Below, piece by piece: positions 10,751-61,540 of a stretch of DNA of 64,000 bases (position 1 is the stretch's first letter; the number at the start of each line of letters is the position of its first letter). The notes under the pieces are model-generated. The model did not search any database. It was not told the origin of the DNA and saw nothing but the letters and a program-made list of their open reading frames with translations. The stretch lies in contig NW_002060957.1 of the NCBI RefSeq assembly GCF_000150275.1, forward strand, positions 1,543,407 through 1,607,406. The letters run 5' to 3'. The position numbers and the translations under genes were made by a program. Source of the stretch: Trichoplax adhaerens (taxonomy: Eukaryota; Animalia; Placozoa).

Positions 10751-13570
10751 ATATATGGATAATCTCATTACAATTAATTATATTATTTATGCAGCACACA
10801 TAGCCTGTTCGACAATTTACTTCATGTATCACCTTGAATATGATACGTTGGAAAAATTTACTAAGAGAAAGAACACACATCAAACGCTCGATATATAATA
10901 TCGTTGATGCTAACATAAGAAAAGTATTGCTTATGTAAAACTGGATAAGATAGTAATTCTCCGAATAATTTACAGTCCGCGAGGATATACGATAGTTTAT
11001 ATTTAGGTCATATAATTGATATTTTTTCAAATGTAACAGTGACCACTAGTAACCGCCCTAATTTTAGGCCTGTCAATGATGTAGAGTATGTTAATAACAA
11101 TACCTCTACCGATTATGGTTGGCACAACTATGTACATATGTGGTATTTCAAATCGTATAGCTGGCAATAAATCAAGTTTATATTAATAATAAAAACTATG
11201 CCATAAAGATATGCAAGGAAGTGAGCTCGATTATGTAGTATAATCGCGGTTAACCAAGTTCTTGACAAACGGATAAATTTAAAGTCTAATTAATTGACAA
11301 AATTATCATCTATAGATAATCAGTTGTACGCCACTGTATTTTGATAGCGTCTTAAGTTTAGGTTTATAATAAAGGGTCTTTAACATTTAGTAAAGTAAAG
11401 ATAGACACGTCGGGATTAACTTCAGAAATCTTATTAAATTGTACTTTCAAGCACCTTAAAAAATATGTTATACTCCATCATCGTAGATACATCATTTTTG
11501 GCCCACTAACGACTACCTGAGAAAGGAACATTCGGCATTATTTTGCAAAATATAGCATCGTGCATTTTTCCTTTGAATGCATAAAATTTTATCTGAATAT
11601 GCTCAACAAAACGCTCTTGTAGTTTTTTCACAATTATTTAGCGATCTTACTTACAAACTAACAAAACAGATAAATGGCTTTAATATATGCTGCTTAACGG
11701 GCCAAATTATAGATGATTCGAAGATAGCATAAGTTGAATTGGATAAATACATTGCAGTGAATTTTATAGTTCATTGATTTAATTTTACCTTTGCAATATC
11801 TTTCTGATCGAAGCAATTGCGCGGAAAGATTCTATTATGGATATTGCAATTACAAATTATTGCCCTAATTGATTAAATTAGCTAGCTAAGATCTATTCCA
11901 GTACTCTATTACTGTTTAGGTGATTCTATTTTCATGATTACTACTGCAAGCAATCAAACAAGGCACCAGTATTATTAAATATTACTAACAGTCGGCAAAA
12001 CTAGAAATGCGATTGTTAATACGTCTATTACTCTAATTGAAGATATATTTGGTCACAAATTATTTGGCAGCGAATTCTTGCTTGCTCTAAATCATTTATT
12101 AAGTATACAAAATGCTGTAATTACAGGTTAACTACAACGTTGTTACTGCACGCCATATATCAGTACATCTTTAAACTATATCTAACATAATCAATAAATT
12201 GGAGTATTCATTTGATGATAATAGATATTTCATAATAATTATAACGATAAAAATTATAATATTCTTATAAATGGGCAACCGCACTGCAATTTATCCATGA
12301 TTTGTACGGTAATACTACTACTTATCTTAAATCATACAAGCTAATATTACTTTAGATAAATTAGCTAATTATAACTATTGTTGTAAAGTGGTTACATATT
12401 ATTCTAACGTTAATAATTATAATTTCACCAGAAATTGAAGACATTAAATCTATAATCTCCGCCCATAATTAACAAACTTGTTAAAATGATCTTCTACGGA
12501 GAAAAATAAAGGGAATTTAGGTTATAACACTATAGCAACAGACATTATTTCAAACAAGACTTTATCTGGTTAAAGACATCAAATGTTTAGGTTGCATAAG
12601 TAACACTTTATATTTAGTAAGTAAGTAAAGGTAGCTATAATATTTAACAAATGTAGTAAAGTTTTTGTCTTTCTTTCGACTAAATATATTAGCAGGCTGC
12701 ATTCAAATTCTCCATGGTGTTAACTATAATCTGTATGGAATGTATGATGTCTTTACTAGATAACTTTTCATCCCCTTAATAACCTAAAATTGCGTCTTTC
12801 ACCTTATTTAGCTGAGAACAGATAAACTCAAATTAAGCTATCAGTTTATTTGTACAATAAACAAAAAATGGTACAAAAACATAAAAATAAAACTGCTCAA
12901 TAAATAATCTGCACTATGTTGTCAAAGTAAGTTTATTGTACGGCTTCACGAATATTTAGTAACGGTTCCTTATTTAATAGTGAAACAATGAATGATGTCC
13001 ACTGATAACAAGAGTAAAGAGGTAAAACAAGATATGGTCTAAGAAATACATAATTAATGATAAACATAAGATGCCTTAGTGGGCGATAGTGATTCTTGAA
13101 ATCACTACATGGTTAATAAATGATAAACAAGACAAAAGATAAAATAAATTAACTGAAAAAGAAACGATGAATACGATAATCAAGATTTAGATATGTAATG
13201 TAGAGAGAAATAGATTGGTTTATTGTACTGTTTTTCTATTCTGATAGCTTCTACGCATTTTTTTTTATTGAGTGCAATAAAATTGACTATTTATCTTAAT
13301 ATTAACCTGCTTAACTGTTATCGTGAAAAGTCGAATAAGAATACGATATGGTAGACAGTATTGCAAAGAGCAATCCTTTAAACTAATTTCCATCTTGATC
13401 AAAATCATATTAAATTAGATTGGGGGTTCTGATAAGATTAAGTAGAGTTTGTCTTCGAAAGATTTAGATAAATAGGCATTCTATAATAAATTGTATTAGA
13501 AGCGGCTCATGTTTTCAATGAATCAGCAATATTTTCAATCAAATTACAGAATCAACTCAAATGTTAAGCG

Positions 13571-13957: not shown

Positions 13958-14965
13958 TTAGTAATTAACGCGCCTTACTCCTTCTTTAGCTGCTTGCCAC
14001 TGATAATTATTGTTTTCACTTTCCGGTAATGATTCTGTAGAAATTGAAAGTTTCTTACAGCAATATAAAGACAGTGTTTCAGAAAGATGGCCAAAATCAA
14101 TTACGTCTTGATGAAGTGCTAGAGTCTTTTCACTCCCATTATCGTTGCAATTCTTATCTTTCCAGTAGATTTTAACGCGAGAAAAGCTACCAAGCCTAGC
14201 TGTCACGCTCTATGTTTATTATATTTCATCAATTAAACAAACATTCTTATGCAGTGTGAGTTTATTAGAAAATTCGTACATCATTTATTTAATAAGCTGA
14301 TCTAAATAGATGTGAAATATTAGCTCCATCTCCAATTAATCGGTATGCTGCAATTAACTAAATTCACTCAACTTACACTTGGCTCTGTAACAACAAAAAC
14401 TGCACCAGCATTGATGAAGCCATGTGCAATTAAATTCGATTGTAAAGAATCCACAGCTAAGGCAGTATCTTTAAGTATTTGCAAAATTTGCGTTGGTTGT
14501 AAAATTTTGGACTCAAGTTCCATTAAATGACTTAATATAGAAACATTTTGCCCCTTAGTTGCGTAGCATGTTATTCTAGTAAAATAAAATTCAAAGCTTG
14601 TAAATGGCGAAAATGATTAGGTAGTACCCTCACGAATTCAACCGTTAACTGTACTTTCAATCAGTCAAGATTATTTCAAAAAATACGCATTAATAAAATT
14701 CTAAGTTTTGCGTTATGGCTAATATTATTTACAATTTTCCCTGTATATCGATGTTGACCAATTCATCATTTACCATTTGACATTTGCCACCATTAATCAA
14801 CCTCAAACACTTGGCAATATTTTGTAACCTAAGATTACGCCGTTTTATAGCAATATAGAATTGCATCTCATTTTTCCAGCATTTTATTTCATCCTTAGAA
14901 TACATTTTTAATAATTCGAACGGACAGGCCTTAGTATTTGTTTCTTGCTCAACCAATAAATAGCT
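13958..14965 (-). CDS. Three in-frame exons encoding a degenerate (pseudo)kinase domain; probable C-terminal tail of the upstream GPCR
   Basis: Exons 14965-14733, 14575-14377 and 14209-13958 have canonical AG/GT ends and matching phases (0/2/0). Translation: ELLKMYSKDEIKCWKNEMQFY..RNLRLQNIAKCL (beta3-Lys, alphaC-Glu), ILQILKDTALAVDSLQSNLIAHGFINAGAVFV (alphaE and catalytic-loop position), VTARLGSFSRVK (DFG position), HQDVIDFGHL (subdomain IX). Confidence 0.7.
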
Positions 14966-16258
14966 CTATAAATGTGAGAGTCAGTTTTAAAACTCGAAGT
15001 TATATTTACTGTGCATAGCCTAGCCAATTTAAATTAAGGTGATATCTATCGCCCTACTTTAGTGAGGCTTAAGTAGATTATTATAATTTAACTAGCAATC
15101 TACCGTAGACTAATGAATAAATTAATTAACGGCCATTCTAACTTCAGGCGGAAAATTTCATAGATTTTTATGACTTATTTGTGATCGTATCAATCAGATA
15201 AATTATACTAATTGCAACAGTTAAACTTATTTAAAAATGTAAATTAGATAAATTTAGAAATGATAACAGTTTATTTTTCACCGTATGACAGTTTTTGGCA
15301 GTATCTACTTTTTTTAAAGTAAATTATTTTATTCTAATAAATGAAACACTTAAAAGCCTAGGAAAAACTACTATTCTGGAGGTACTTAGATATAAAGGGT
15401 CTGAAAAATAAATACTTCGTTAACAATTTCAAATTGAAAATTGTTTAATACATTTCATAGTTAAAGCAATAGCATAAAAACGAAGGAAAAATTTCAAAAC
15501 TGTCAAATCCAATTTAATTCTAACATCACTAATTCACACCCCAACTGATAATGCATTTAATGAGCGAATAACTCACTTAAAACGGTAGTTAAATAGACAA
15601 GAAATGCAATAAACCTCAACTTAGACCTTGTTATTGTCTTTCAATTAGTCGAATACCCACTACCTATCCAAATCTAAAGAAACTACGGTAATTAATATCT
15701 CTGCATTTACTTAAAGCTTTATACAATTTTCTATCCAAATTTAAAACAAAGTATCAAATCTATTGATTTTGATGTTGCATTTAGAGCCGCATCTTGGGAA
15801 TACAAAAATAGAAGAATATAGTAGCTTCTTGAATTTTTAAAAGAAATAACCTCTACTATTGAGATATAAGAGACAGGAAATAAATACTCTAAATGATCAC
15901 TTCTTGATATTTTTTCGTCACTCAGGACTTAAAAAGGTGAAAATAATGTTAGCAGCTACTTCTTGGAAATCATTTTATTTTAAATTACTGATTTAGCATT
16001 CTTATTACTGTACAGGTAATTTAAATAGTATTTGAGCCGACCTTATCTATGTGATGAGAGGTAGTTAAACATGATTTCGCCAGGTGCTTCTTAATTCTAG
16101 ATTCGATTTCAACACCTTCAAGATATTAAATATTATTTAAAATAAAGCATTTAGAGCATTAGTCATTAAAATGAAGGAATGTATGCTTTATAGACTATCG
16201 TAGTCTAGAGCTAGCTTTTAAATCCAAAATTATTTAAATTTGATCGTAATCAACTTAC

Positions 16259-16555
16259 TATGCCATTCTTGATAGCGTTCATTATGCTCAATTCGTTCAC
16301 CACAACTCCAACAATATCTCATAAGTAATAAACAGCAACCCAATATCTTAAACCAATTATTCGCCGTATTGATAAAAGTTGTTATAAATATAGTATACAA
16401 GATAGGATTGATACAAGAATTAAGTGGTAAGGAGAGAATAGCAATAAATGGTAAACTGTGAGTATCCAACCCTAGGCCAAATCCAGCCCGAAGTAGAACC
16501 ACATACAACGGTAGCCAACAAATGAGATCCGTTATTGCAATGGTGATCATTTTAG
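16259..16555 (-). CDS. TM6-TM7 and start of C-tail of a rhodopsin-class GPCR, LGR/RXFP (LRR-GPCR) type; truncated by an assembly gap
   Basis: IAITDLICWLP (LGR-type TM6 TDxxCWxP) and ILSLPLNSCINPILYT (LGR/RXFP-type TM7 with NPxxY). A strong donor GTAAGT at 16258-16253 shows the gene continues downstream rather than ending at the ORF-track stop. Confidence 0.85.
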
Positions 16556-16605
16556 NNNNNNNNNNNNNNNNNNNNNNNNNNNNNNNNNNNNNNNNNNNNN
16601 NNNNN
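16556..16605. other. Assembly gap (50 N)
   Basis: Run of N, plus a single N at 16622. Confidence 1.
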
Positions 16606-18000
16606 ATTAATTATAAGTGAANTACCTTTTTATTATTTTCAGTGCAAATATTGATTAGCCAGAATCTTTAATGTGCAAAGATTACTGTCAGAAATCAAAA
16701 AAAAATGATGAGTAATACCAGTATTACAAAGCAGTTTGAAAGGTTGATATATGAACTATCCATAAAGTAGCAATTAATGGCTCATCGGAAGTAAGTTACG
16801 AAATCGATACTTTTAGAACTCGATCCGCCCTTATCCTTATTTAAACAAATGAAATACATAAATGATTTTTATTATTGCAGTATAATCACATTGAATGTTA
16901 AACTAGCACAAAATTTATTGGTAATATCAAGCAGATGGTCTTCTCCTTGCTAGAATAGTGTGACAAAACCTGTCGTACTAACTGTAATTAGCGTTTAGAT
17001 CATACAAGTAATTTCATAATAGCAGATTTTATTACTGATTCTATACCGATTGCGATACTACGTAACAATATAACAGCTCTGACAGACAAGGAAAACTTCT
17101 TACAACAGCAGATCTTAGAAAAAAGGGCTAGAACAACAGTAACAGAAAAGCATAGCTGCTTAAATACGTCATCTAACTTTATTACAGTATAACGATTGCA
17201 AACAACATCAATTAAGACTTACAGAACTTAGCATGAGAATAAAATTCTTTAATTACAATTAGTATTACATTCTGTAAAGCAGAAATCAATATACTCGAAC
17301 TATTGCAAATATTACATATATTACACCTTTAATTGTCAACAGCCCCAGATTTTGATATTATTTTTAAATTATATCTAATTTATTTTTACATAACATGTTG
17401 ACAACGACAGCTTATCTAACAGCTTCTTTACCAATAGTAATTTAGAATTTACAGACAGCAAAGAACTGATATTTTTTTATCTACTTCTTTTGCATTATAA
17501 TTTTTACTCAACTTTAGATAAAAGAAAATTCCATCTCTTGAAATGATTTTAAATTTACTAATTGCATGTATCTCATTAGCCTTAAATTAAATTCTGGGGA
17601 AGAAGAAGATATATGTCTTTTCTTTATTATTTATGTAGCTACTGGGATTAATATCATAGGTAATTAAATCTATTGATCTCTGTATTATTAATAATATAAT
17701 AAAAGAATTCCTTACTTATAAGTAGATACATGAAAAAAATATTGCAATATAAGGCGATACTTTATTATCACAATTCTACGCTAAATTTTCTATCTAGTAG
17801 TGAGATAATAACTTCTTCATGCGTTGCTAATTATTTTTTTGAAGACTAAGATTATTAATTATCCACATATGTTATACTGGATAAGCTCAGAACTTTCCGA
17901 ATTAATATAGATTCTGATGCTAATCATAAATTTTCAGATTTTAATTAGCTTGGGAAATTTAACTTCTTTAGTCTACCGTAATTATCATTCATATAATATA
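16606..18000 (-). pseudogene. Possible decayed LRR-GPCR 5' portion
   Basis: Short minus-strand fragments in the expected order: LRR-like GRLKKLNFP (~17978-17952), DITNKFCASLTF (ECL1/TM3-like, 16928-16893), PLIATLWIVH (TM4-like, 16780-16751), DSNLCTL (ECL2-like, 16689-16669). They are interrupted by stops and frame changes. Weak evidence. Confidence 0.3.
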
Positions 18001-18756: not shown

Positions 18757-19489
18757 TATACATGTTAGATAAGAACAGTATAGAGCAATACATATGCAGT
18801 ATTTATTACTTGATTGAAAGCTATAAGTAGGTTTGAAAGTGATTGCTAGCTATATACCTAAATCTAATAATCCCGTATACAGTACTTGCGTTTGATCCTT
18901 ATAGAAGAACAGCACAATAAATGGATGTAGTTGGTAACGATAATAGAGACTGAATAACATGTACCTGCTATATCTTTCTTTTAATAATATCGTCCACTTT
19001 CTAGCTGTGGTTGTCATTATGGAAATAAAATAAAAATAAATAGTAACAGTATACTTGAGAACATATAACTAATGATAATTTAGTAAGTACGATATTGTAA
19101 TTCATCGCAAGTAATAATATTGGCATCTAGGTAATTTTAAGGAATAACTGACAGTATGATAGTAGTCTACAATCACAAGCTTAAGTGGCAAAATATTAAA
19201 ACAAGTTAGCTACTCTGTCATTCTACAGTCGATGTACTGCGTAACCGAGTTTAATTATCTTTTACATGTAATATTTGTAAAAGTAGCGAATGGAATGTAT
19301 TCTTGCAGAACAGCACTGGCAACAAAGTTCTAAGGTTCTATGCCTCTAGCAGATTCTAGAGTTACAATTAGTTCACTCTTTACCTGAATCATATCCGAAA
19401 AAGGCATCTGATTATTTTGCCATCCATAGCTTGTCCGGGAAGTTGGCGAGGATCTAAGAGTATATATCAAGATATACTACTATTAAAAT

Positions 19490-19543
19490 TACTAGCAGAC
19501 TACCCGTTGAAATGAACGGGAATTAAATTCAAAGCAAGCACAT
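19490..19543 (-). repeat. Dispersed ~50-bp repeat, copy B (palindromic core CCCGTT-n6-AACGGG)
   Basis: Reverse complement reads tgtgcttgctttgaatttaattcccgttcatttcaacgggtagtctgctagta. The core is 18/20 identical to copy C. Confidence 0.55.
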
Positions 19544-20359
19544 AACTTGTAGATAAACATCAATTGAATACTCTCGGAACTTATCCAAATTCAAAGAAAT
19601 GAGCGTTGTCGTCGCAAAGGTATGGAAAATCTGACTAGTGCGGAATAAATTATCCAGTTTCTCACGGTTACCCGTTTGGGAAAGAAATTCGTAATTTTAG
19701 TCCAATTTTCTCTTTCTCAACAATACCTTCCAGTTTAATTAACGATAATTAGTTAATAAAAGTTATTTTTCTATATTAAATCGATGTAAAAGGTTCTCTT
19801 TTATTTAGGCATATGCTGTAAATTACTGACTCTCTCATTGGCAAGGAACCAATGAATTGAGCACATATTATAGCAGATACATACAAGACCAGAGAGTATT
19901 CTCTACTTTCCGCCTCTTCCCCACCCCCCCCCCCCCCGGGAAAAAGGATACCCCTCAATTTTTTGCCCTTTAATTCCTTAACTTAAGACAAAACACTAAC
20001 GACGAGCAAGGCTGTTCTGGACTCCTAGATGTGCTAGGAAGATTGCCTAAAAATAGTCCATGACGTGATCCTGTATAGACCGATATTACGACGTGACTTG
20101 TAAAATGGTTGAAGCGACCAAACATGTAACAGCGACCAATAGTTTGTATAAGAAACATTAAGGCAACATTATAACTAAATATCTTTCAACCATTTGAGAG
20201 GGCCTCGCCACGCCCCGGCACTGTAATTGTGATCTTCTACTGCCCATTTCAGTATACTGAAGTACTCTATACTTCAGATGGACGGATTTCTTCGATCGCA
20301 ACGTCGAAAATACGGTAGTTAGTTGGTTTTTAGTTCGAAATGTCTGTCCGTATGGTTAG

Positions 20360-20398
20360 GTTCAGCTCATAGAGTTGACTTAACTCTATGGTTCAGCT
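20360..20398. mobile_element. Minimal DNA-transposon remnant/footprint: 23-bp palindrome with perfect 8-bp direct repeats
   Basis: GTTCAGCT [CATAGAGTT gactt AACTCTATG] GTTCAGCT. Confidence 0.75.
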
Positions 20399-20449
20399 AG
20401 AGCCATTTTTAACACTACTACATTCATACTGTTTTTTACAGTTAATACT

Positions 20450-20805
20450 ATACAGTACTGTAGTGTACAGTACAGTACAGTACAGTACAGTACAGTAAGA
20501 AGTACTGTACATTCAGTATGCAGTACTGTACTTGACAAAATTTTTGTTATTGCACAGTACGGTACTGTACTTTACAGTGTACAGTATGTAGCATAGCTGC
20601 ACTGGTACTTGTAAAATGCGTGAGAATCACATGATCGTAACGAATCGTAACCATACTGTACAGTAGACCACTACAGCACAGTCACCACAGTGCACCAAGT
20701 CCAGTACTGTACAGTACAGTACTGTACTGTACCGTACTGTACGTACTGTACAGTACGGTACGGTACTGTGCTGTACAGTGTACAGTACGACAGTATACTG
20801 TATCT
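20450..20805. repeat. TACAG/CTGTA pentamer array upstream of hexosaminidase (putative promoter)
   Basis: Perfect (TACAG)6 at 20466-20495 and many degenerate units in both orientations, ending ~130 bp before the ATG. Confidence 0.85.
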
Positions 20806-20932
20806 TTGCTAGTCCATCATTCTGTCTGTGTGTCCGCATACTGCAAAGTAATAACTTAACTTAAATATCCAAGACAAGACGCTGTCGATACGTTTTAAAC
20901 TGCTTATACTGTCTGTGTACCATAAAATCAAA

Positions 20933-23900
20933 ATGGCAATGATGAAAACGATTCACTGGTTCAAACCGTTGATTCTGTTGATATTGGTGGCTTATCCAGC
21001 CATGTGTGTGGTATGGCCGATGCCTCAAATGATGTCAACAACCTCGACTGTACTCACAATTAATTCAAAAAAATTTACCTTTCAATCGAGCAGCAAGAGC
21101 GATATATTACATCAGGCATTCGAAAGATACATGAATATAAGCTTCATTCCATTAGGGAAACAAATTCAACCACAACTTTCGGAATCTTTCAACGTTACTG
21201 CTAGTAGTGGTAGTCTTACCAGTTTGAAAGTAAACGTCCATAGTTCAAAGGAAGAATTAAATCTGGATTCTGTGGAAAACTGTAATGATTGATTTTGGAA
21301 TTGATTCGATTCAACGTTTACTCTCTTTATTCAATGTCGATGTGTTTATCATTGTTTCATACAGTAGTGTGGTGTATTGATGATGAACAGCGAATTACAG
21401 TTAATACTGTGCGTGTGTACAGTATGAGTAGTACCTGTACAGTACATTAATAGGAGTCCACACGACGCCCATGCCAATAACTTCGATCTTTTATTAAGTT
21501 AATTCACTAATGCCTGATACTTATTTCTGATCGTAGATACTTTGACGGTAACGGCAAAAGGAGCTACATTAGATGCTGACGAAGTTTGGGGAGCTCTAAG
21601 AGGTAGTACAGCTAGAAAGCTGTCCAACATAACATAAAAATATCCACGCCATAGCTAACTCTTAAAATGGGGAATGAAACGATTTTAAGGCTAAACAAGA
21701 TTATCTTTTTGTAGGATTGGAAACTTTTAGTCAACTTGTTGAACCTACTGAATCGGGCATGGTAAGTTTAGCTATTCTTAAGTAGTTTTACAACTATTCA
21801 TGGCTTCATGCTGTAGTGGAGGCTTCGCTTTTAACATCTCTTCAAGACTTTGTAATACGTTATATACTGTACTTAATATTTACGCGTAATATGAGTTAAT
21901 GTGATTTTTGGGGATCTGAATGTTAGTTCCAGATTAACGAAACTAAAGTTATCGACTTTCCTCGATTTAAACACCGTGGTATGCTTGTCGATACAGCAAG
22001 ACATTTCTTGGATATGGAAGTACTTTACGAACATATTGTAAGTTTACGTTAGATCTAGGACGCTCATTGATGACATTTAGGAACCGATAAAGATGAATTG
22101 ATGAAAAATGTTTCTAATTACTACTATTGAAACCATTTAACTAAGCTTCTTTTCAAAAGACATAGCTAACCGGTCAATTTTTCCACATAGGATGCTATGG
22201 CTTATAATAAGTATAACGTATTTCACTGGCATATCGTTGACGACGAATCCTTCCCATATGATTCAAAAGTCTTACCAGAAGTTACGGCAAAGGTAGGCTG
22301 TCAATATTTTATTGATAAGGTTGAGTCGTTTGTTACTGTACGCAATTTATCAAATAAAGTATTTTGATTGGTTTGAGCTAAATGGTATTATTTTCTTCAT
22401 CAGCAATGATTAATATTCTACGGTATAAAAACATGCTATTTACATTTGTCAATTAGGGATCCTTTAATCCTAAAACCCATGTTTATACTGCTGATGATAT
22501 TACCAAAATTATCAAGTACTGTAGATATCGTGGTCTAAGAGTAATTCCTGAATTTGATACTCCGGTAAGCACTGACATGAATCTGTATTAGATAGCCCAG
22601 CGAAGTAGTATACATTTAAAATGTTTACATTTAATAAATAACATTCTTTAAAACAGGGACATACTCGATGTTGGGGTCGAAGTAAGCCAAACCTTTTAAC
22701 AAAGTGTTACACTGGATTTTTGCCTAACGGGTATGTCAGGGCCACTTCCTTTATTAGTTTATGACAGTGGACTCCGTTTATTATATAATCATAGTTTGGA
22801 CATGAGCTATTTTGCTCTTTTGAGAATAACCAAAATACAACATGTTGGTTATCTCAAAGAGAAAATCGGAACATGCTGGCTTTCTGGAACTAATAGTCTT
22901 ATTTCATTCAACAGCAAAACTGGCCCAATCAATCCTATATTTCCTGAGAATTACGAATTCATGAAAACTTTATTGTCTGAAGTTCATAAGAGATTTACTG
23001 ATAAATATATCCATCTAGGTGGTGATGAAGTCTTACTTAATTGCTGGTTTGTATGCATGAAAGATACGTACTGTTTAGACTTTGATAGTGCATATAGCAA
23101 TGTCGGTGACTACAAATATTTTTGCAAACGCAAATTTTATAATATAGGAAAAGTAACCCTGATGTTAGAAACTGGATGGTAGAGAAAGGATTAGGCAATA
23201 ATATTTCTCTATTGGAATCCTACTACGAGTCCAGGTGCTGTTCATAGGAATAATGCATTTTATGCTAATGCATAGATAACATAGATATGTTATACAATCT
23301 GAATATGGTCTCATAAAATTTTTTCTTAACGTGAACAGATTGTTGGGAATTGCTTCCAATTTAGGCTATGACTACATTATTTGGCAGTCTGTTGTAGATA
23401 ACAACGTGAAGGTACAACCCCTCGCATCTCATCTTGCCGAAGTGTTATTATCCTGTATTGTAGCAAGCGTAAATAATAATTTCTTAATTATTTACAGGTA
23501 ATGCCGTCTACGGTAGTCAACGTTTACAAAGGCGGATTTCCAGCTGAATTAGATAGGGTAACAAAGAGAAATTTTACTACTATCTTATCTTCATGTTGGT
23601 ACTTGGATATTTACGCTTACGGACCTGACTGGAAGAGGGTATGATTTATTAGTTAGAAATTTTCTACAGAATCCTGATATTTTGTTAAATTTTGTTGATA
23701 TTTTACAATCTAATAAACTATTCGAATATAATATATATAGTACTATAGTTGCGAGCCCTTTTCTTTTAATGGTACTCAAAAACAATACGACCTAATCATT
23801 GGCGGCGAATCTTGTATTTGGACCGAATACGTTGACGATACCAATCTAATATCCCGCGTATGGCCGCGGGCAAGTGGAACTGCTGAACGACTATGGAGTG

Positions 23901-38500: not shown

Positions 38501-41138
38501 AGATTGTTATAGTCCATTAAAGCTATGCATTGCGACTGTTACAGTAACATTACATGAGACCTGCAAATTTTTCTGCCAAAACATACAACGCTTTTCCTCT
38601 TCACATAAATTATTTTTGTTGCCAACTAATCATAAATCTTAGATTTAAATTCAGTATTCGCCATAGTTAATAAATAGAGAAATCATACTTTTTGAAAATA
38701 AGGCAGGCTACTCTCTTTATTGAATACTCACCGAGAATTCGATCCTTTTCTACGTTACGAAACTGTCTGTCTACTGCTGAAATAAATTTAAGCATAGTTG
38801 GACTTGCATATTATTAGTACTTATATTACGAATATCACTACAGTAAGCAAATGATGAGAAATACCGGGGATAAGCTAGAATCGATGCTTTCTTTCGACAG
38901 TAAAAATTGTTAATTTCTAGTTCAATCGTCATTAGTAAAGCGATCACATCATAAATCAGTGAAATCGAGATTTTAAAGAACCTGCACCGTTAAGGCTTAT
39001 CGATTATTTGCAATGTAACAGTTGTATATTTTTATTGAAATTGTTTTAGCTTTCATGCTTTCGCTATTTCTCATGTACTCATGCTGTAGGGGCTCACGAA
39101 ATTGTTTAGTACGTTATCATGCAATGATAAAAACGAGATTGAAAATATTAGATCATGACAATAGTCCCTTCCCATTATGCCGTATATCCTAATCCTATCT
39201 GAATTGTTAAATTATTCTAAATTAAAACCAGTGCCTTTTGTCCTTAATAAAATATTCTATCTGGCTACTGCTTGCGTATATTGCTACAGTATTAACTAGT
39301 GCAATAATAGTAGCATAATGTCAAAGCCGTTATTCGCCAACACTCGCCCACTATTGATTTCACCCATATGTAGTTGAAAACAACTATAATCGGCTGCATT
39401 GCTCATAGTCAAGGTAAATGCATCTAGAAAATGTTGTTCTATCTGCATATTGTTACATAATGTTATTACGGATCTTTACTATCAGCTTTTATTTTCTAAC
39501 GGACTTCACAAATGCTACATGGTTGACATTTTTCGGAATAAGCAAGTTAATAAAGTGATCATCCATTGCCATTTTAGCTGAAAATTAAAGAGGAAATAGA
39601 TACAGTCTTTCTGATTACCTATCTCTCTTAAACAATACAGTAATGTAAATGGACTGAAGTAAAATTTAAAAGTATTAAATCTCTAACAGAGAATACTAAC
39701 AATTGTTGGGTCTAGCTGAAGAATAGATGATATTGAATTGAGATACTTCTGATTGCTCCCTAACAGAGATATTTGTACCCACGAAAATTAATTTCAGTAA
39801 TGATTATTTTCATAGGTATAAAATAGAGAAATCATGGAGCGTACTAATTTTAATGTAAGATATTTACTACCAAGCCTAAGTATTATCAATAAATTTCGTT
39901 CGAAATAGTATTATGCGCACTACGCGTACAACTTGCAGTGCGCTATTAAACAATAATAGTTATAACCCTAACCAAATTCTGTCTAGCTATAACGAAGCAA
40001 TTTTAGGAGTTTTTATACGTACTTTACAGCAATTGCACAATAAACTTTATCAAGTCAAAGACATATGTTTCCCCCACAACGAATAAAGCAACTCAATTCT
40101 TATTTATATTATACAACTATATTTAATGACATATTTTCATGGATAGGCTAAGCTGATTCTATACCCGCATTTGCGACAGTTCTTAAAACTGTAATACTGT
40201 TAATATATACGTAATCGTGATTTTTTGGTTAGCATAGTTACATTCTAACAATAAAATATCCAAATTTGACATCGAGAAACTAGCAACCTCTGAAGAAAAT
40301 AATTTTAATTTACCATAAATTCTCAATTTTGAAAACACCAACGTACTAGTTACTAGTTATTAAAAAGAAATATTATTGGCACGCTTTACGATATAATTTC
40401 AAGAGAGTTTAAATATGCATTCATAACCGAATAATACATAAAACTCTTTTTAAGAGAGAAGTAAATGCAATTGCTGCAATTAAGACTTATCAATAAATCT
40501 AATATAAAGAGAGAATACTGATAAAGATAAATAATTATAATTTAAAATGGCAGGTATGGTTTCAAAATAGACGCGCAAAATACAAAAAAAAGAAGAAAAT
40601 TGGCTCGAATGGTAACTTGTTTGCCTGTGGGTCAACATTGCCATCAGGCCAGCCCAGTATTAATAGTCATAATTCTGTTATGGGCGAAGGTCTAAGCTAC
40701 GGAAATTATCATTCAGAAGAGCCTTGGCCAACATTAAACTCGACCGTAATGACAACATCGCCATCACAACCTGTTTCGTCCTTGCAAGTGCCTAGTAACC
40801 ATCTATCTCAACATCCAAACCAACATCAGCAATCCATACTACAATCTACCGGTGGACGAAACTATCAACAAAATCTCCATCATCATCAAAATTATTCCAA
40901 TCAAAATAATTCTAACGTCAATGGAGCACCTAGCATGTTCACATCACAGCCTTCCACTTTCCAAAACGCGCAATATGTCAATCCTAGATTGGCTGCTGCT
41001 ACTCACCAAGGCGTTTCCTTAACTTCGATGCAACCAATTAATCAATCAGTGGCAGTTAATGACTCATGGCAAGGATCTAGCTTAGCAAATTTACGTCAAA
41101 AAGCTTTAGAGCACAAAGCCACCATTAACTATATGTAA
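35506..41138 (+). CDS. otp: Orthopedia, PRD-class Q50 homeobox protein with C-terminal OAR motif
   Basis: Exons 35506-35551 (predicted start), 35927-36201 and 40554-41138 are in phase. Homeodomain [46 protein letters not shown]|[12 protein letters not shown] carries Otp-diagnostic [15 protein letters not shown] and ESRVQ. OAR motif [16 protein letters not shown]. Confidence 0.95.
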
Positions 41139-53883: not shown

Positions 53884-56467
53884 ATGGGTCCAAAAAATCA
53901 TCGTCAAAAATCATCCAAAGGCTATACTATCGATTTACTATTAAGTGACAGCGAAACAGATGGAAAAGTAAAAGATGGCCAACTTTTTAATGCTGTAGGA
54001 TATGCCAATAGTCCAGGTAATAAAAACAGCTTTTTCCGCTTTACTGTAGTCATATCTAGAGGTGAGCTAATACTACAAGTATCCTATTTTATATTGAAAT
54101 TCGCATATTAGCATATTAATTGCAATCGTAACAAGTTTGCTCTATATTAATAGTATGGATCTACAAATACTCATTTGCTAAGTATTTTATTCAATTTACT
54201 TTAGTAACAATCTGTTGATGTTAATTTAGCATATGAAATCCTAGAGAGGCATCTTGTATTTCATTTAAAGTGATGATCTACTGCCGTTATATAATTACTT
54301 AGTCACTATTTCTGGTAACATAATCCTATGGTGACCTTAGCTGCAGTAGTATAACGATTAAGCAAAAATGCAATAAATTTGAACTTTTTATTGCTTATTA
54401 AATGACGCAATATATTTTTTACTGAAATAATTAACACTTTCTACATAATAGCCTTAAATTGCTCGCCATTAGTATAAATTGCGTTAGGATAGTAGTGATG
54501 AATGCTGATTATGGGATATTATCAATTCTACTTGCTATCGCATTCGCATGAATATTTCTTCCTAATCTCTGTAAATCCAATTAAGATAAAAATTTCTCCT
54601 TCCTTGGCGTATAGAAAACGTAATTATTTGATTTTATAGCATCTCAATTTGTAACTACTTTCAACACTAGATGTCAGCAATAGAGAAAATTTTCTGTTGC
54701 TGAATTTGAAAAAGCATAGTTGACAGTATTGCAAACATACTGAGTAAAATACCGGAGCAGTCAACAATATTATTTTATACTCTAAATTTGTTGCGACCAG
54801 GTGTACGTGTAACTGCACAATCTACAGTACATAGTTTAGGTAATAGAAGTGGTTATGACTTGACAAGGGGGACAGCGACCTATTCTAGTTGAATCATTAA
54901 GAAAAACAATTTGCCTTTGACTGAGAATTAGAATAGCATGTATTACAGACTGCAGGATTATCCGCCATATATTTCCAATATTAGTTTTTTCATGATGAGA
55001 TGGCTATTCTAGATAGAAAATATTTATAATAAGTTGCAATGGTAGATATTGAAGATCATCGTATTCTGCGTCGCTAGGAAGCATTATTTCGTGTTGTATT
55101 CGTTCAATAATGCGAGCGTACTTATTCCTTAAAACCCAAGTATCTAGTTGTTGAGTTCTTACTGATATCAATAAATGCTAATAAAATCTAAATTACTTTT
55201 AAATACATGCTTTGAAGAAATAATGTAGCATTTAGCCGTAACTATGCATATTGAGATGTTAAAAAAGACTAATGCAGCTTCTTGTTTTGATAATTACGAC
55301 AGATAAAAGTAGCAAATGCCAAAGTTCATATTAATAATTAAAATGATTAATCATCCCTGTTACATTATTAAAACATTTTAAACTTCTTTAGCAATAATAT
55401 TAGACTCTGTATTATCATACAACGATGTTCTATGTGTATCATTAATTTCCTTGTAAAGTACCGCTACAACTGAATTCTCATGTGAATATTCTTACCTATT
55501 AATTATTTGTACCTATATTACTATTGCTTGATTATATTACGTATTTGTACTACTGTCTCGTCTCATATTAATCCTTTATCATACATATTATTCCGATAAG
55601 TAATATCGTCTCTTGTAAAGTAAAGTAGCAAGTAAATATCAAGCGATAACATATTATAAGATTTACAGGAGAATACAGAAAAGGATGATCTTGTTTCTAC
55701 CCATAATTCAATACAATTGACATTCGTTGTCCATTTTCTGTTTTAGATAGTAGTAAGTCTAGTGGTGATGGCATCGATGAAAGTACAACTACGATGCGTT
55801 CAAAGGGTAATAACAGAAAATCGAAGAAGCTTAGGAGAAGTCGAACTACCTTTACTACCTTACAACTTCATCAGCTTGAACGAGCATTCGAAAAAACACA
55901 ATACCCTGACGTCTTTTCACGTGAAGACTTAGCTATGCGATTAGAACTAACGGAGGCTAGAGTTCAAGTAAGATAATTATGATTTTAATATCATAGACGA
56001 CGATTGTTAGTCTATGAATGTGATATTACTCATCGCTGTCTCGACCATTAATTGTTAATGGCATGAATGGAATTCCAAATATCAAATAGGTGTGGTTTCA
56101 AAATCGCCGCGCTAAATGGAGGAAACAAGAAAAAGCCACTGGCCGAGAAAGTCCTCTTGGAGATTATCCCCTTGGGCAAAATGTTCAAGAAGGTCAATTA
56201 CGAAGTTCGAATGGTTATGAAGGAGTAGTATTTTCAGGATATCCGTATAAATCGGCAGTTCCATTAGTAACTACCATGACAACTGCATATCCATATAATA
56301 CCAACATTAATTCAGTGGCACGTTTTGGTCATCAGATACCATATATTGATTACTCGAAGGCAACTTATATGAAAGAGTTAGCAGCTTTGGCAAACACTAC
56401 ACCAGGAATTTATAACGGTCCTGCTATCGCTAATTATATTAACGGGCTTCACGTAATTCGCAATTAA
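53884..56467 (+). CDS. hbn: Homeobrain-like PRD-class Q50 homeobox protein
   Basis: Exon 1 starts at 53884 (donor after 54016 or 54061, both phase 1) and has the eh1/octapeptide-like GYTIDLLLS. Further exons 55747-55967 and 56090-56467. Homeodomain [46 protein letters not shown]|[14 protein letters not shown]; [13 protein letters not shown] and KTQYPD are Hbn-type rather than Rx/Arx. No OAR seen. Confidence 0.88.
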
Positions 56468-58053: not shown

Positions 58054-60405
58054 TTATGAAAGTTTAAGTTTTTTGGCACTATTTCCAGTCTCAAAAGAAC
58101 TTAATTCTGAAATATTTGGAGCGGCATCTCGTATTCCACTGGTCTAAAATCGTAAAGTAATGATAAGGGTCAGTGAGAACAATTGTCAACTTAATATATT
58201 TCAATGATTGTACTTCCTATCATGATATTAACCTTGATCTGAAAAGACACGGTGGCATTTTGCTTCTGCGGTGATTTATATAAGCGAGCGTATCTACGCC
58301 AAGATAAATTACAATATACTCTATATTAGTGCTAATGAAGGTACATTTTATTCAAGTAGAATTTACCTGACGCCGTTTTCCATAAATAGGATGGTACGAT
58401 TTGCACACGTGTGACCCCAAGTCTCTCCTATGTGTTATATGATCAATTAATGAGTGAAATTGTTACTTAATTTAGTACTTATTGCCTGCATTATACTTTG
58501 TACCTAAAGCTGGTAACAACTGACTTGAATCAGAGTTGGAATTGAATCTCATCGTAATATGATTGGTTAGTACAACCTATATAAGATATCGAATAATTTA
58601 GAAGTATAAAAGGGGGTTGTCAATAGATCAATCTTAAATTAATGATGAAAACTCTTACCGCCAGTTCGTGATCTGTTGCGATGCGAATCAGTTGTTGTGC
58701 AATTCCATTTAATACTCTTGTTCTCATTACCAAGTCATCGAAAGAGTAACGAAAGGGAGAAGCGATACTATCCACAATAATTAATCGGACCTAGTATAGT
58801 TGATACACTACAGACTTTGTAATTCTCCAGGCAGGGTTATGACATTCATCTTAAACTTTGATTATTCTATTCTCGCTATCAAGTCATACCTTTCTACTTC
58901 TTTCTTGAATAAAATCTTCTAAAATGTTTACAGTTGCTATTACTTCCAAATAGTTCAGACAGCGGAAACAGTAGATATGCTCCATGATAAATTCAGGAGT
59001 AAAAGTTGATAGTTTTGACGCTGATTCTAATGTATATATATATATATATATATATATTTATGAAGACAAATATCCTTGTTTTTATACCCATCTTGAAAAT
59101 AAGAGTAAGAATATAAACCTGCCCATAACCTTTATGACCTTTAATATTTTGTCTCGCTTCTTTAATACAAATCAATAAGGAGTCTTACCTTTATCATCAT
59201 TTTTCTCAACGGTGGCATTTAGATAGCCTACGGTAGCTTTGGCTATGTCATACAATCTTTCTGGCAAAAAACTGCCCTCGGTATCTACCGATTAATATTT
59301 ACAATTTGCTTGATTTATAAGTATCATATATACGTATATTAAGCCATCTCGATCAACTTGAGGCGATATTACGTCTAAACTAAAGTCATATTGATGGGGA
59401 AGTACATCTTTCTGAATCGTATTGAATAACGAATGTAACTTACCAATGTAAATGACGGATCCATTACATCCGCCACATTCTTCCATAATTTGAGCACTGA
59501 CAGCCAATTGCATGCTAGAAAATGGTCGTTCAACGCAGTGGATGTATCATATCGATTTATTAATTTATTAGGCAAGTAATTTTGCAATGTTAAGTGTACT
59601 ACTATACATGATTCTATTCAATGACAGACAGCCTGTAATTAGACTTATAGGTAACATAGTAAAAAAAGGAGAAATCATTACAATTATAATTATTATTACT
59701 GCTTTTATGCCTATTATAATTATATTATGATGACAAATTCATTCCTTTGCTTACCATAGTTGTGTTTTACCAATGCCAGGGGGCCCACAAAACTCTGTAA
59801 TCTTTCCTAGAGGTATACCACCACCGAGAGCTTGATCTAACTTTGCACAAAATGTGACTATAGGATTAAGGTTTTGCTCATTTTCTAGTAGTTGTTGAAC
59901 TGGGATTAAGGCATCGTCTAATTGCTGAGAAATTTGCGTTGCATTACGAGCTACTTGGATCATTTGTACTGCATCTGTATGACTGATTCCGGTATCTACG
60001 AGATTAATTACATCAAAAGTGGCAACCATAATCTGTCGTTGTACATGTCTAACTTATCAAGTATGCAATTCTTTTATAAATTAGGGGAAATAGTAAAGAC
60101 TAGCCCCCATAGTAAGTGCATCGTTACGGCTTTGCTATCGATGCAAATGATGTGTTTGCTATACTCGTATGCGTGTATTAGACAACAACACAATTACATA
60201 CATGATGCTCTACTGTATGCTGTTGTACATTAAGGTAGTACACTTAGCCATTATATGCGAACGATGTTAACTATGCAGTTTTCTAACCTTGGCTTAGCTC
60301 TAATGGCGTCGATGATAATAAATCTCCGACGGTTTCATAACCAGTAGAAGTTAATTTGACAATTTGCCATTGAGGCAGCTTTAGAGAGTTAATCTGTTGC
60401 TGCAT
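58054..60405 (-). CDS. RAD51C: DNA repair protein RAD51 paralog C, about 10 exons
   Basis: ATG at 60405 ([26 protein letters not shown]). [41 protein letters not shown] (Walker A), [47 protein letters not shown] (Walker B, RAD51C-typical), PALGETWGH and LYKSP. Stop at 58056-58054. Confidence 0.95.
59033..59056. repeat. (TA)12 microsatellite in a RAD51C intron
   Basis: Direct read; lies a few nt from the minus-strand splice acceptor at ~59027. Confidence 0.95.
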
Positions 60406-61540
60406 CTGACCAACTTATTTGCATTGCATGCGATTGACGAAACGTGTGTGAAAAAAATGAATAAGTGCATACGCGTATGCTGTACAGTACAGTACAGTAC
60501 AATAATTTTAAGTCATGAGCGACTTGCAGCAGCCTACCTCGTCTACCAAAAAAATGTTATTTAGTCCTAAAGCTAAGATGCTTCCATGGTTGATAGTTGC
60601 ACAGCCTACCATAACATGGACTAAATGCTAAAAAGTTACGCACTGTCTTGAACTATTTCTTGTAGTCCATGATACTGTACATACTGTATTTGTTGTGAAA
60701 GCTTAATACAATAGTCCCTGGTATAAAATATTTTGTACCTTTGTGGGGCAGTTCAAAAATGCCAAATTGAAAAGGACCCCACATACAGTGCTTTGTACTG
60801 TACATTGTATTACCAGTACTGTACTGTACAGTATTTAAATCATGATGGGCGCTACGGTAGTAGTAGAGGTGATACATGACGTCACTTCTGAGAGACTGAC
60901 GTCATCTTAACGTCATTGATGAATAAGAATTCTAGATGCGACTCTCGTCCAAGGAGAAGGTGATCATTTTGCTGGTCATTTCACTGTAACGTACTGTACA
61001 AAATCAATACGCCAGGCAGAAGAGCGTATAGATTCATTCTACGCATAGAATGAATGGAAGAAAGAAATGGTAAGTAAAATCGTTAGCCGACTGATTGCTA
61101 CTAAATAGTTTGACTTCGTTCTCTTCTCTGTGCTCCCGCAGACGTACAGTACAGTACTGCACACTGCACAGCACCGTTCTGTACTGTACAGTACAGTACA
61201 GTACAGTACAGTACTGTTCTGTACGGTACTACTGTACAGTATACAGTACAGTACGGTACTGTACAGTACATTGTATTGTTGTACTGTTCGTTGTACCGTA
61301 CGATGTACTGTACACTGTACAGTAGAGTAACCTGTCAAATGCCAACCTGGCTTCATTCTCCGATCCTAGTTTTAATGAGCATCAAGGACTGATAGCGAAC
61401 ATTTTCTGTCGAAATTCTAACCAAAAGATCTACTTCTCTACTACTCACGATTCTACAGACTGTGCGTTTTATAAAGTCATCTATAGTGTTGAACTCAAAA
61501 TCGACTATTGACTAAGTAGGTAGGTGATTGCTCATCAGCC
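60406..61540. promoter_or_regulatory. Divergent promoter region between RAD51C and FUNDC, with TACAG arrays and tandem CRE sites
   Basis: Head-to-head ATGs about 1.1 kb apart. (TACAG)3 at 60483-60497, (TACAG)5 at 61187-61211, and dense degenerate units at 60670-60835 and 61140-61325. TGACGTCA at 60877-60884 and 60897-60904. Confidence 0.75.

Follow-up and report, generated by a model that had tools for sequence, protein, structure and literature searches.

The 64,000-nucleotide stretch of the Trichoplax adhaerens genome analyzed here (contig NW_002060957.1, positions 1,543,407 to 1,607,406), referred to as the window, carries on its minus strand a receptor-pseudokinase feature, in which part of a G-protein-coupled receptor (GPCR) is followed by exons that encode a kinase-like tail. 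The genome comprises 105.6 Mb in 1414 contigs, is intron-rich and has a GC content of ~ 30%. The open reading frame (ORF) at 16553-16230 (-) encodes transmembrane helices 6 and 7 (TM6 and TM7), helix 8 and a Cys-rich tail. TM6 contains CWLP and TM7 contains NPILY, so that both the CWxP and the NPxxY motifs of rhodopsin-class GPCRs are present. The match of this piece to the Pfam 7tm_1 profile (20.9 bits, E 2.8e-4) is below the gathering score of 30.5 bits because only the TM6-7 fragment is available. The locus corresponds to the public gene model TRIADDRAFT_60497 (XP_002116506.1, B3S8D3; protein P0007), which is 333 amino acids long. The features of the locus are listed in Table 1.

Table 1 Features of the receptor-pseudokinase locus, in window coordinates.
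Feature	Coordinates	Strand	Content and basis
Assembly gap (run of N)	16556-16605	.	Interrupts the seven-transmembrane (7TM) exon; TM1-5 and the leucine-rich-repeat (LRR) exons are missing beyond it
3' part of 7TM exon	16259-16555	-	TM6, TM7, helix 8, Cys-rich tail; 7tm_1 match, paralog identity, donor context
Linker exon of TRIADDRAFT_60497	16042-16115	-	Phase 1 to 0; choice in this copy putative
Alternative linker exon	15851-15927	-	Phase 1 to 0; slightly higher score against paralog linkers
Exon A	14733-14965	-	Kinase N-lobe: β2-β3 (Lys), αC (invariant Glu), β4/5; paralog matches, splice sites
Exon B	14377-14575	-	Hinge, αD, αE, degenerate catalytic loop HGFINAGA; paralog and profile matches
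Exon C	13979-14209	-	DFG-equivalent SFS, short activation segment, αF-like helix with D..L..C motif
Last coding exon	12933-13001	-	22 codons and stop (coding 13001-12936); public model, aligns with last exons of paralog models

The exon structure of the locus is real and agrees with the public model. At 16259 the 7TM exon closes in phase 1, and a GTAAGT donor follows directly; if left unspliced, the reading frame would meet a stop nine codons further on (16230). Exon A opens in phase 0 after a TAG acceptor and closes in phase 2 at its donor, GTAAAT preceded by TT. The 3' end of exon C is set by a conserved phase 0 GTAAGG donor after position 13979, in accord with the public model. TRIADDRAFT_60497 joins the TM6-7 exon to the linker at 16115-16042, exon A, exon B, exon C up to 13979 and the last exon. 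Its exon A stops at an earlier donor after RRNLR, and the final 32 codons of that exon are absent from the model. In the window copy the splice from the 7TM exon to the tail would run through one of the two linkers in Table 1. The intron holds 21 phase-compatible AG...GT linker candidates, and the two are therefore not above chance when taken alone. In the paralogs described below, the counterpart of the linker encodes β1 and a degenerate Gly loop, and residues 103-122 of the public protein, which span the linker region, are included in the structural alignment with kinases.

These results bear on an earlier annotation that was made from the letters of the window before any search (the sequence-only reading). 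Its 7TM exon ending in phase 1 at 16259 with a GTAAGT donor is borne out, and the two linkers that it proposed (16115-16042 and 15927-15851), each converting phase 1 to phase 0, are both open, the public model taking the former. It had further drawn three tail exons at 14965-14733, 14575-14377 and 14209-13958. The first two coincide with sites conserved in ~ 12 paralogs and the start of the third at 14209 stands. The third exon ends at 13979 instead, and the last exon at 13001-12933 had been overlooked.

A search of the Trichoplax genome, which the sequence-only reading had suggested for the same architecture, detected a paralogous 7TM exon at ~ 14 additional loci. The TM6-7 piece of the window is 66-84% identical to the TM6-7 regions of 14 paralogs. 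Exons A and B have homologs (lowest E 4e-6 and 4e-10, respectively) on the same strand, 1-4 kb downstream of the paralogous 7TM exon, at ~ 14 loci, a recurrence that places exons A and B far above chance. The order on one strand is the 7TM exon, the linker and exons A, B and C across these loci. A genome search with the single sequence of exon C was unproductive, the sequence being too diverged; a motif scan detected exon C in every scanned locus that extends that far. Exons A, B and C retain their splice acceptors, donors and phases in ~ 12 loci, the window locus among them. In all five loci for which a database model exists, the 7TM exon ends in phase 1 at a donor of the form GTA(A/G)G with a stop 2-19 codons beyond, and a linker exon of 21-25 codons restores phase 0. 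Every residue that is invariant in the family is present in the window copy. The tail exons of recent duplicates have ratios of nonsynonymous to synonymous substitution (dN/dS) of 0.21-0.31, and the family tail is under purifying selection.

The same arrangement was found on two metagenome contigs from an AT-rich (30% GC) placozoan-like genome (L032 and L031; ENA ERZ23499115, scaffolds 11326 and 6618), with ~ 50-55% amino acid identity; the exon orders there are 7TM exon/A/B and A/B/C. The family is therefore older than the split between Trichoplax H1 and H2. Within the Trichoplax genome, at least six members lie on one contig (G000:C1394:136000-353000, near 138, 173, 268, 308, 343 and 351 kb), some with stop codons (268 kb) and some as near-identical recent duplicates. 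This cluster is a tandem expansion in which birth and death are ongoing. A second sub-type of an exon-B-like module (ICYELP...IVHNAILPENI), in which the Asn of the catalytic loop is retained, was observed in proteins P0142, P0148 and P0048.

Public gene models join the receptor and the tail. Three models of Trichoplax sp. H2 combine LRR_8, 7tm_1 and the tail (RDD45091.1, 1129 residues; RDD39592.1, 896 residues; P0154, 747 residues), and a fourth, RDD41878.1 (417 residues), contains TM5-7 and the tail without LRRs. With the two Joint Genome Institute (JGI) models TRIADDRAFT_60497 and TRIADDRAFT_60495, these are four H2 and two JGI models in which both parts are joined. The H2 annotation was produced with the evidence-based Maker pipeline and a Trinity transcriptome (PMC6057997). 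The paralog models score 87-92 bits against 7tm_1, and LRR_8 is detected in the H2 orthologs of paralogs with E values of 8e-38 and 4e-24. NCBI names the H2 models 'GRL101-like' or 'Relaxin receptor 2' (the latter being RDD39592.1), and in UniRef two fragments of the tail bear the label 'Protein kinase domain-containing protein'. Of two word-indexed homolog searches with parts of the tail, one recovered nothing beyond the cluster of the query itself (P0005) and the other a single H2 protein (P0154). The link between the 7TM exon and the tail that had been proposed for the window is thus supported, as far as sequence can tell, by the layout and phases conserved in ~ 14 paralogs and by the public models that join the two. 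The analysis of the neighbouring gene (L011; proteins P0005 and P0152) led independently to the same reading. Several JGI models split or truncate genes of this family.

The fold of the tail was examined by profile searches and structure prediction. The exons were searched singly, and the spliced proteins that were folded are the public ones; among these, P0007 is without the final 32 codons of exon A. A profile built from the exon B sequences of 15 loci retrieved hundreds of kinases from the PDB, aligned at αE and the catalytic loop (CDKL3 with E 1.9e-5, and also MST1, PAK1 and RAF1). The only other top matches, TALE repeats, were rejected as an artefact of repeat summation around an LTPE motif. 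Against 1.84 billion representative proteins, the same profile recovered P0007, and the non-placozoan matches that were checked are bona fide Pkinase proteins. The exon A profile yielded three PDB matches, all to the N-lobe of TGFBR2 and collinear with it over β2, β3 (K), αC (W..E) and NI. No Pfam kinase match was found in P0007, and the paralog models reach 20.5-21.7 bits against PK_Tyr_Ser-Thr, under the cut-off of 23.1.

The AlphaFold2 model of RDD41878.1, computed with the family alignment, has a mean predicted local distance difference test (pLDDT) score of 69.5, with 72-94 in the tail. A Foldseek search with it gave at least 500 PDB matches at E <= 0.001, and 50 of 50 among the matches listed are kinases. 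The model of the window public protein (mean pLDDT 71.8; tail 79-94) likewise returned kinases only among the matches listed (E 7e-5). Alignment of its residues 103-333 with VIA-align ranked ACVR1, ALK1 and ACVR2A first, with a Z score of 13.3, a root-mean-square deviation of 4.0-4.7 and 184-194 aligned residues. Beyond the DFG-equivalent, the predicted models form long helices and lack a normal activation segment, which indicates that the C-lobe is reduced. By these models the tail adopts a bilobal kinase fold with a shortened C-lobe, and it is nearest to the kinases of the TGF-beta/activin receptors, of the tyrosine kinase-like (TKL) group. The proposal that the three exons form a kinase fold of TGF-beta-receptor/TKL resemblance was therefore upheld by the exon B profile, the AlphaFold/Foldseek and VIA-align matches, the exon A match to TGFBR2 only and the top-ranked structures. 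Of the checks on the spliced protein that had been proposed with it, the Pfam search left the kinase below threshold, and AlphaFold with Foldseek gave kinases only.

The catalytic motifs of the tail are degenerate. In the window copy the β3 Lys lies in LLKMY and the αC Glu in WKNEMQFY, HGFINAGA replaces HRDxxxxN and SFS replaces DFG; there is no GxGxxG Gly loop, HRD Asp, DFG Asp or APE. These motifs had been read correctly from the sequence at the outset. Across the family, the β3 Lys is found in the window and most other copies and the αC Glu is invariant. The HRD position is mostly HG[NSGFC], with YG in one copy and HR in another. At the DFG position the copies read [NDKGSE]F[ST], with FL in a single case, and only two of them retain the Asp. 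The Asn of the catalytic loop is mostly lost, and neither an APE motif nor a Gly-rich loop is present. Since the Gly loop, the HRD and DFG Asp residues and APE are missing, the tail is, to judge from its motifs, a catalytically dead pseudokinase, predicted to be unable to phosphorylate.

The locus is probably best explained as the 3' part of TRIADDRAFT_60497, a member of a placozoan-specific subfamily of ~ 14 receptors that resemble the leucine-rich-repeat-containing GPCRs (LGRs) and in which the 7TM exon is spliced through a linker to a kinase-fold tail with a scaffold role. The receptor would consist of an LRR ectodomain, a hinge, a rhodopsin-class 7TM domain, a short linker exon and four exons for a kinase-fold domain of ~ 230 residues. 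We infer that the domain, tethered in the cytoplasmic tail, most likely has a non-catalytic role in docking or regulation. Once the receptor is activated, the tail would dock or dimerise differently with its partners, for instance active TKL receptor kinases or other effectors. This would happen in addition to coupling to G proteins; the paralogs retain the DRY, CWxP and NPxxY switches. A more far-reaching proposal is that these proteins form a placozoan receptor class in which an LRR-bearing, hormone-receptor-type GPCR with a pseudokinase derived from a TGF-beta/activin receptor kinase would use docking or dimerisation of the pseudokinase to pass ligand binding on to TKL receptor kinases or effectors of the SMAD type, independently of G proteins. 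This proposal is unlikely to hold.

Several observations weigh against the scaffold-bearing receptor subfamily as an account of the window. At the locus itself, scoring the 21 linker candidates with BLOSUM against the paralog linkers did not discriminate among them. Upstream of the gap (16556-16605), 4.4 kb of sequence yielded neither TM1-5 nor LRR exons, and the 90% cluster of P0007 contains no H2 models. The tail stands alone in two public models, JGI TRIADDRAFT_61685 (P0002) and H2 RDD39140.1 (P0001). As to the fold, single-exon searches of Pfam and the PDB found no kinase, and the exon C profile and a whole-domain profile of five sequences were blank against the PDB. The exon A match to TGFBR2 has an E value of only 0.14, the structural ranking among TKL and tyrosine kinases is tied, with IRAK4 and SYK within 1 Z, and the TM-scores are modest (0.35-0.48).

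The window copy may be a 5'-truncated relic, that is, a pseudogene or rearrangement fragment in which TM6-7 and the tail are left and no functional receptor is made, the architecture of the family being real all the same. This is a possible, if doubtful, account of the locus. It would explain the empty 4.4 kb beyond the gap, where a scan for LRR motifs showed background density and the sequence flanking the gap is non-coding, and the lack of an H2 gene model that clusters with P0007. In addition, the sole genomic relative of window segment 19265-20235 lies on contig C922, near a TM1-5 piece with stop codons. However, the break falls exactly at an assembly gap and adjoins low-quality sequence (an N at 16621), ~ 240 tail codons are open in a genome of 30% GC, and neither splice sites nor family-invariant residues have been lost. 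The front half was either lost in the assembly gap, or the copy is a truncated relic. An LRR ectodomain and hinge within the same gene, as expected of an LGR, are found in the H2 orthologs of paralogs and are absent from the window copy as assembled. The sequence-only reading had called the gene LGR-type; that name suits the paralogs and their H2 orthologs, which carry LRR_8, and for the window copy, which is without LRRs or TM1-5, it therefore derives solely from TM6-7 homology.

Two other contigs were considered in connection with the missing half. The ~ 1-kb segment at window 19265-20235 occurs only twice in the genome, the second time on contig G000:C922 (L030; positions 1924-2910) with 89% identity. 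At that site a TM1-5 exon piece interrupted by stop codons is found 1.3 kb away and runs off the contig. The C922 piece could be a decayed duplicate of the missing front half of the window gene. It was rejected as the source of the missing 5' half, as its TM1-5 has stops and the remainder does not align. Contig C775, considered as an orphan TM1-5, proved to be a 99% copy of a paralog locus (L013).

It is very unlikely that the window holds two adjoining genes, a GPCR that ends at its own stop at 16230 and a separate soluble pseudokinase formed by the kinase-like exons. The in-frame stop nine codons past the putative donor, and 2-19 codons past it in the paralogs, would suit such an arrangement, as would the tail-only models P0002 and P0001. 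However, P0001 is flagged partial and its sequence begins within the linker, and P0002 opens with a mini-exon that was predicted ab initio. Among the matches to exons A and B, no tail with a complete flank stood alone; all lie on the same strand 3' of a 7TM exon, barring contig-end cuts (C1266 and the second copy on C1288), one locus with a broken TM6 remnant (L020) and C1385, where a marginal exon B match (E 0.0098) has no clear family 7TM exon alongside. The phase 1 donor and the linker that leads from phase 1 to phase 0 are conserved, and the parts are joined in six public models, four of them evidence-based models of H2 and two from JGI. A chance resemblance, the tail being a novel helical/β domain unrelated to kinases, is scarcely credible: it would fit the lack of Pfam matches above threshold, the blank single-exon, exon C and whole-domain searches and the low TM-scores, but the exon B profile retrieves hundreds of kinases at the right sub-domain and in the right order, two independent AlphaFold models lead to kinases only with a probability of 1.0 and Z scores of 12-13 over ~ 190 residues, and the exon A alignment to TGFBR2 is collinear.

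The placozoan subfamily resembles receptors of the LGR, RXFP and GRL101 types in its 7TM domain, with CWxP and NPxxY in the window copy and DRY in the paralogs, and in the LRR_8 ectodomain and Cys-rich hinge of the paralogs and H2 orthologs. It differs in a tail of ~ 290 residues that includes a kinase-fold domain, and the window copy differs further in having neither LRRs nor TM1-5. Characterised LGRs have a short C-terminal tail and are not known to carry a kinase there. A review lists 46 placozoan LGRs and includes 41 Trichoplax-specific ones, and the word 'kinase' is absent from it (PMC9545775).

The N-lobe pattern of the tail, with the β3 K, W..E..FY in αC and NI, aligns with TGFBR2 and thus resembles the kinases of TGF-beta, activin and BMP receptors (serine/threonine kinase receptors, STKR, in the TKL group). 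Unlike these, the placozoan domain lacks the Gly loop, the HRD and DFG Asp residues and APE, has a short activation segment and is carried by a 7TM rather than a single-pass receptor. Dead kinase folds serve as regulatory or scaffold units in receptor signalling chains in the kinase-homology domain of receptor guanylyl cyclases and in JAK JH2. The parallel with the tail would be a functional analogy; the kinase lineage and the receptor type differ.

Fusions of GPCRs with kinases have been described as GPCR-bigrams in oomycetes and amoebozoans, as GPCR-TKL/K in choanoflagellates, as GPCR-TK in choanoflagellates and sponges and as GPCR-TMKs in sea urchin, and none has been functionally studied (PMC6033456, PMC12716839, PMC10463195). 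The statement in the sequence-only reading that GPCR-enzyme fusions occur mainly in oomycetes and other protists thus needs to be widened for kinase fusions, which are also found in choanoflagellates and sponges (PMC12716839). The placozoan fusion is apparently of independent origin. The published fusions have kinases that Pfam or InterPro detects and 7TMs that the papers do not place with the LGRs, whereas the placozoan protein is an LRR-bearing rhodopsin-class LGR whose kinase is sub-threshold, dead and reduced in the C-lobe. A literature search found no GPCR-kinase fusion on an LGR-type receptor.

The remainder of the window contains several other features. Exons of a beta-hexosaminidase at 20915-23179 (+) adjoin the receptor locus on its upstream side and lie on the opposite strand; they match Glycohydro_20b2 (E 6e-8) and Glyco_hydro_20 (E 1e-9). 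Of two ORFs at 40617-41135 (+) and 56090-56464 (+), one has an OAR motif at its end (Pfam E 9e-5), and the start of the other resembles by eye the end of a homeodomain, with no Pfam match. This suggests one or two paired-class homeobox genes. An exon at 59754-60029 (-) contains a Walker-A motif and has sub-threshold matches to RecA/Rad51 (E ~ 1e-3). The ORFs at 1174-1464, 20386-20839 and 61039-61356 contain peptide repeats of the TVLYCTV type, recognised by eye, and look like translated short tandem DNA repeats and not genes.

Catalogues of GPCR-kinase fusions are recent and cover oomycetes, amoebae, choanoflagellates and sponges. Domain surveys have apparently overlooked an expanded animal family in which an LGR is combined with a dead TKL-like kinase, as the kinase domain scores under the Pfam thresholds. 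The gain from the window alone is smaller, as the copy is incomplete in the assembly and its gene model is already public. The family offers a tractable case for the role of a pseudokinase tethered to a GPCR, and if the G-protein-independent relay were true, it would constitute a direct bridge between GPCRs and receptor kinases in an early-branching animal. It also bears on the wiring of peptide sensing in placozoans, which have no neurons and hundreds of GPCRs.

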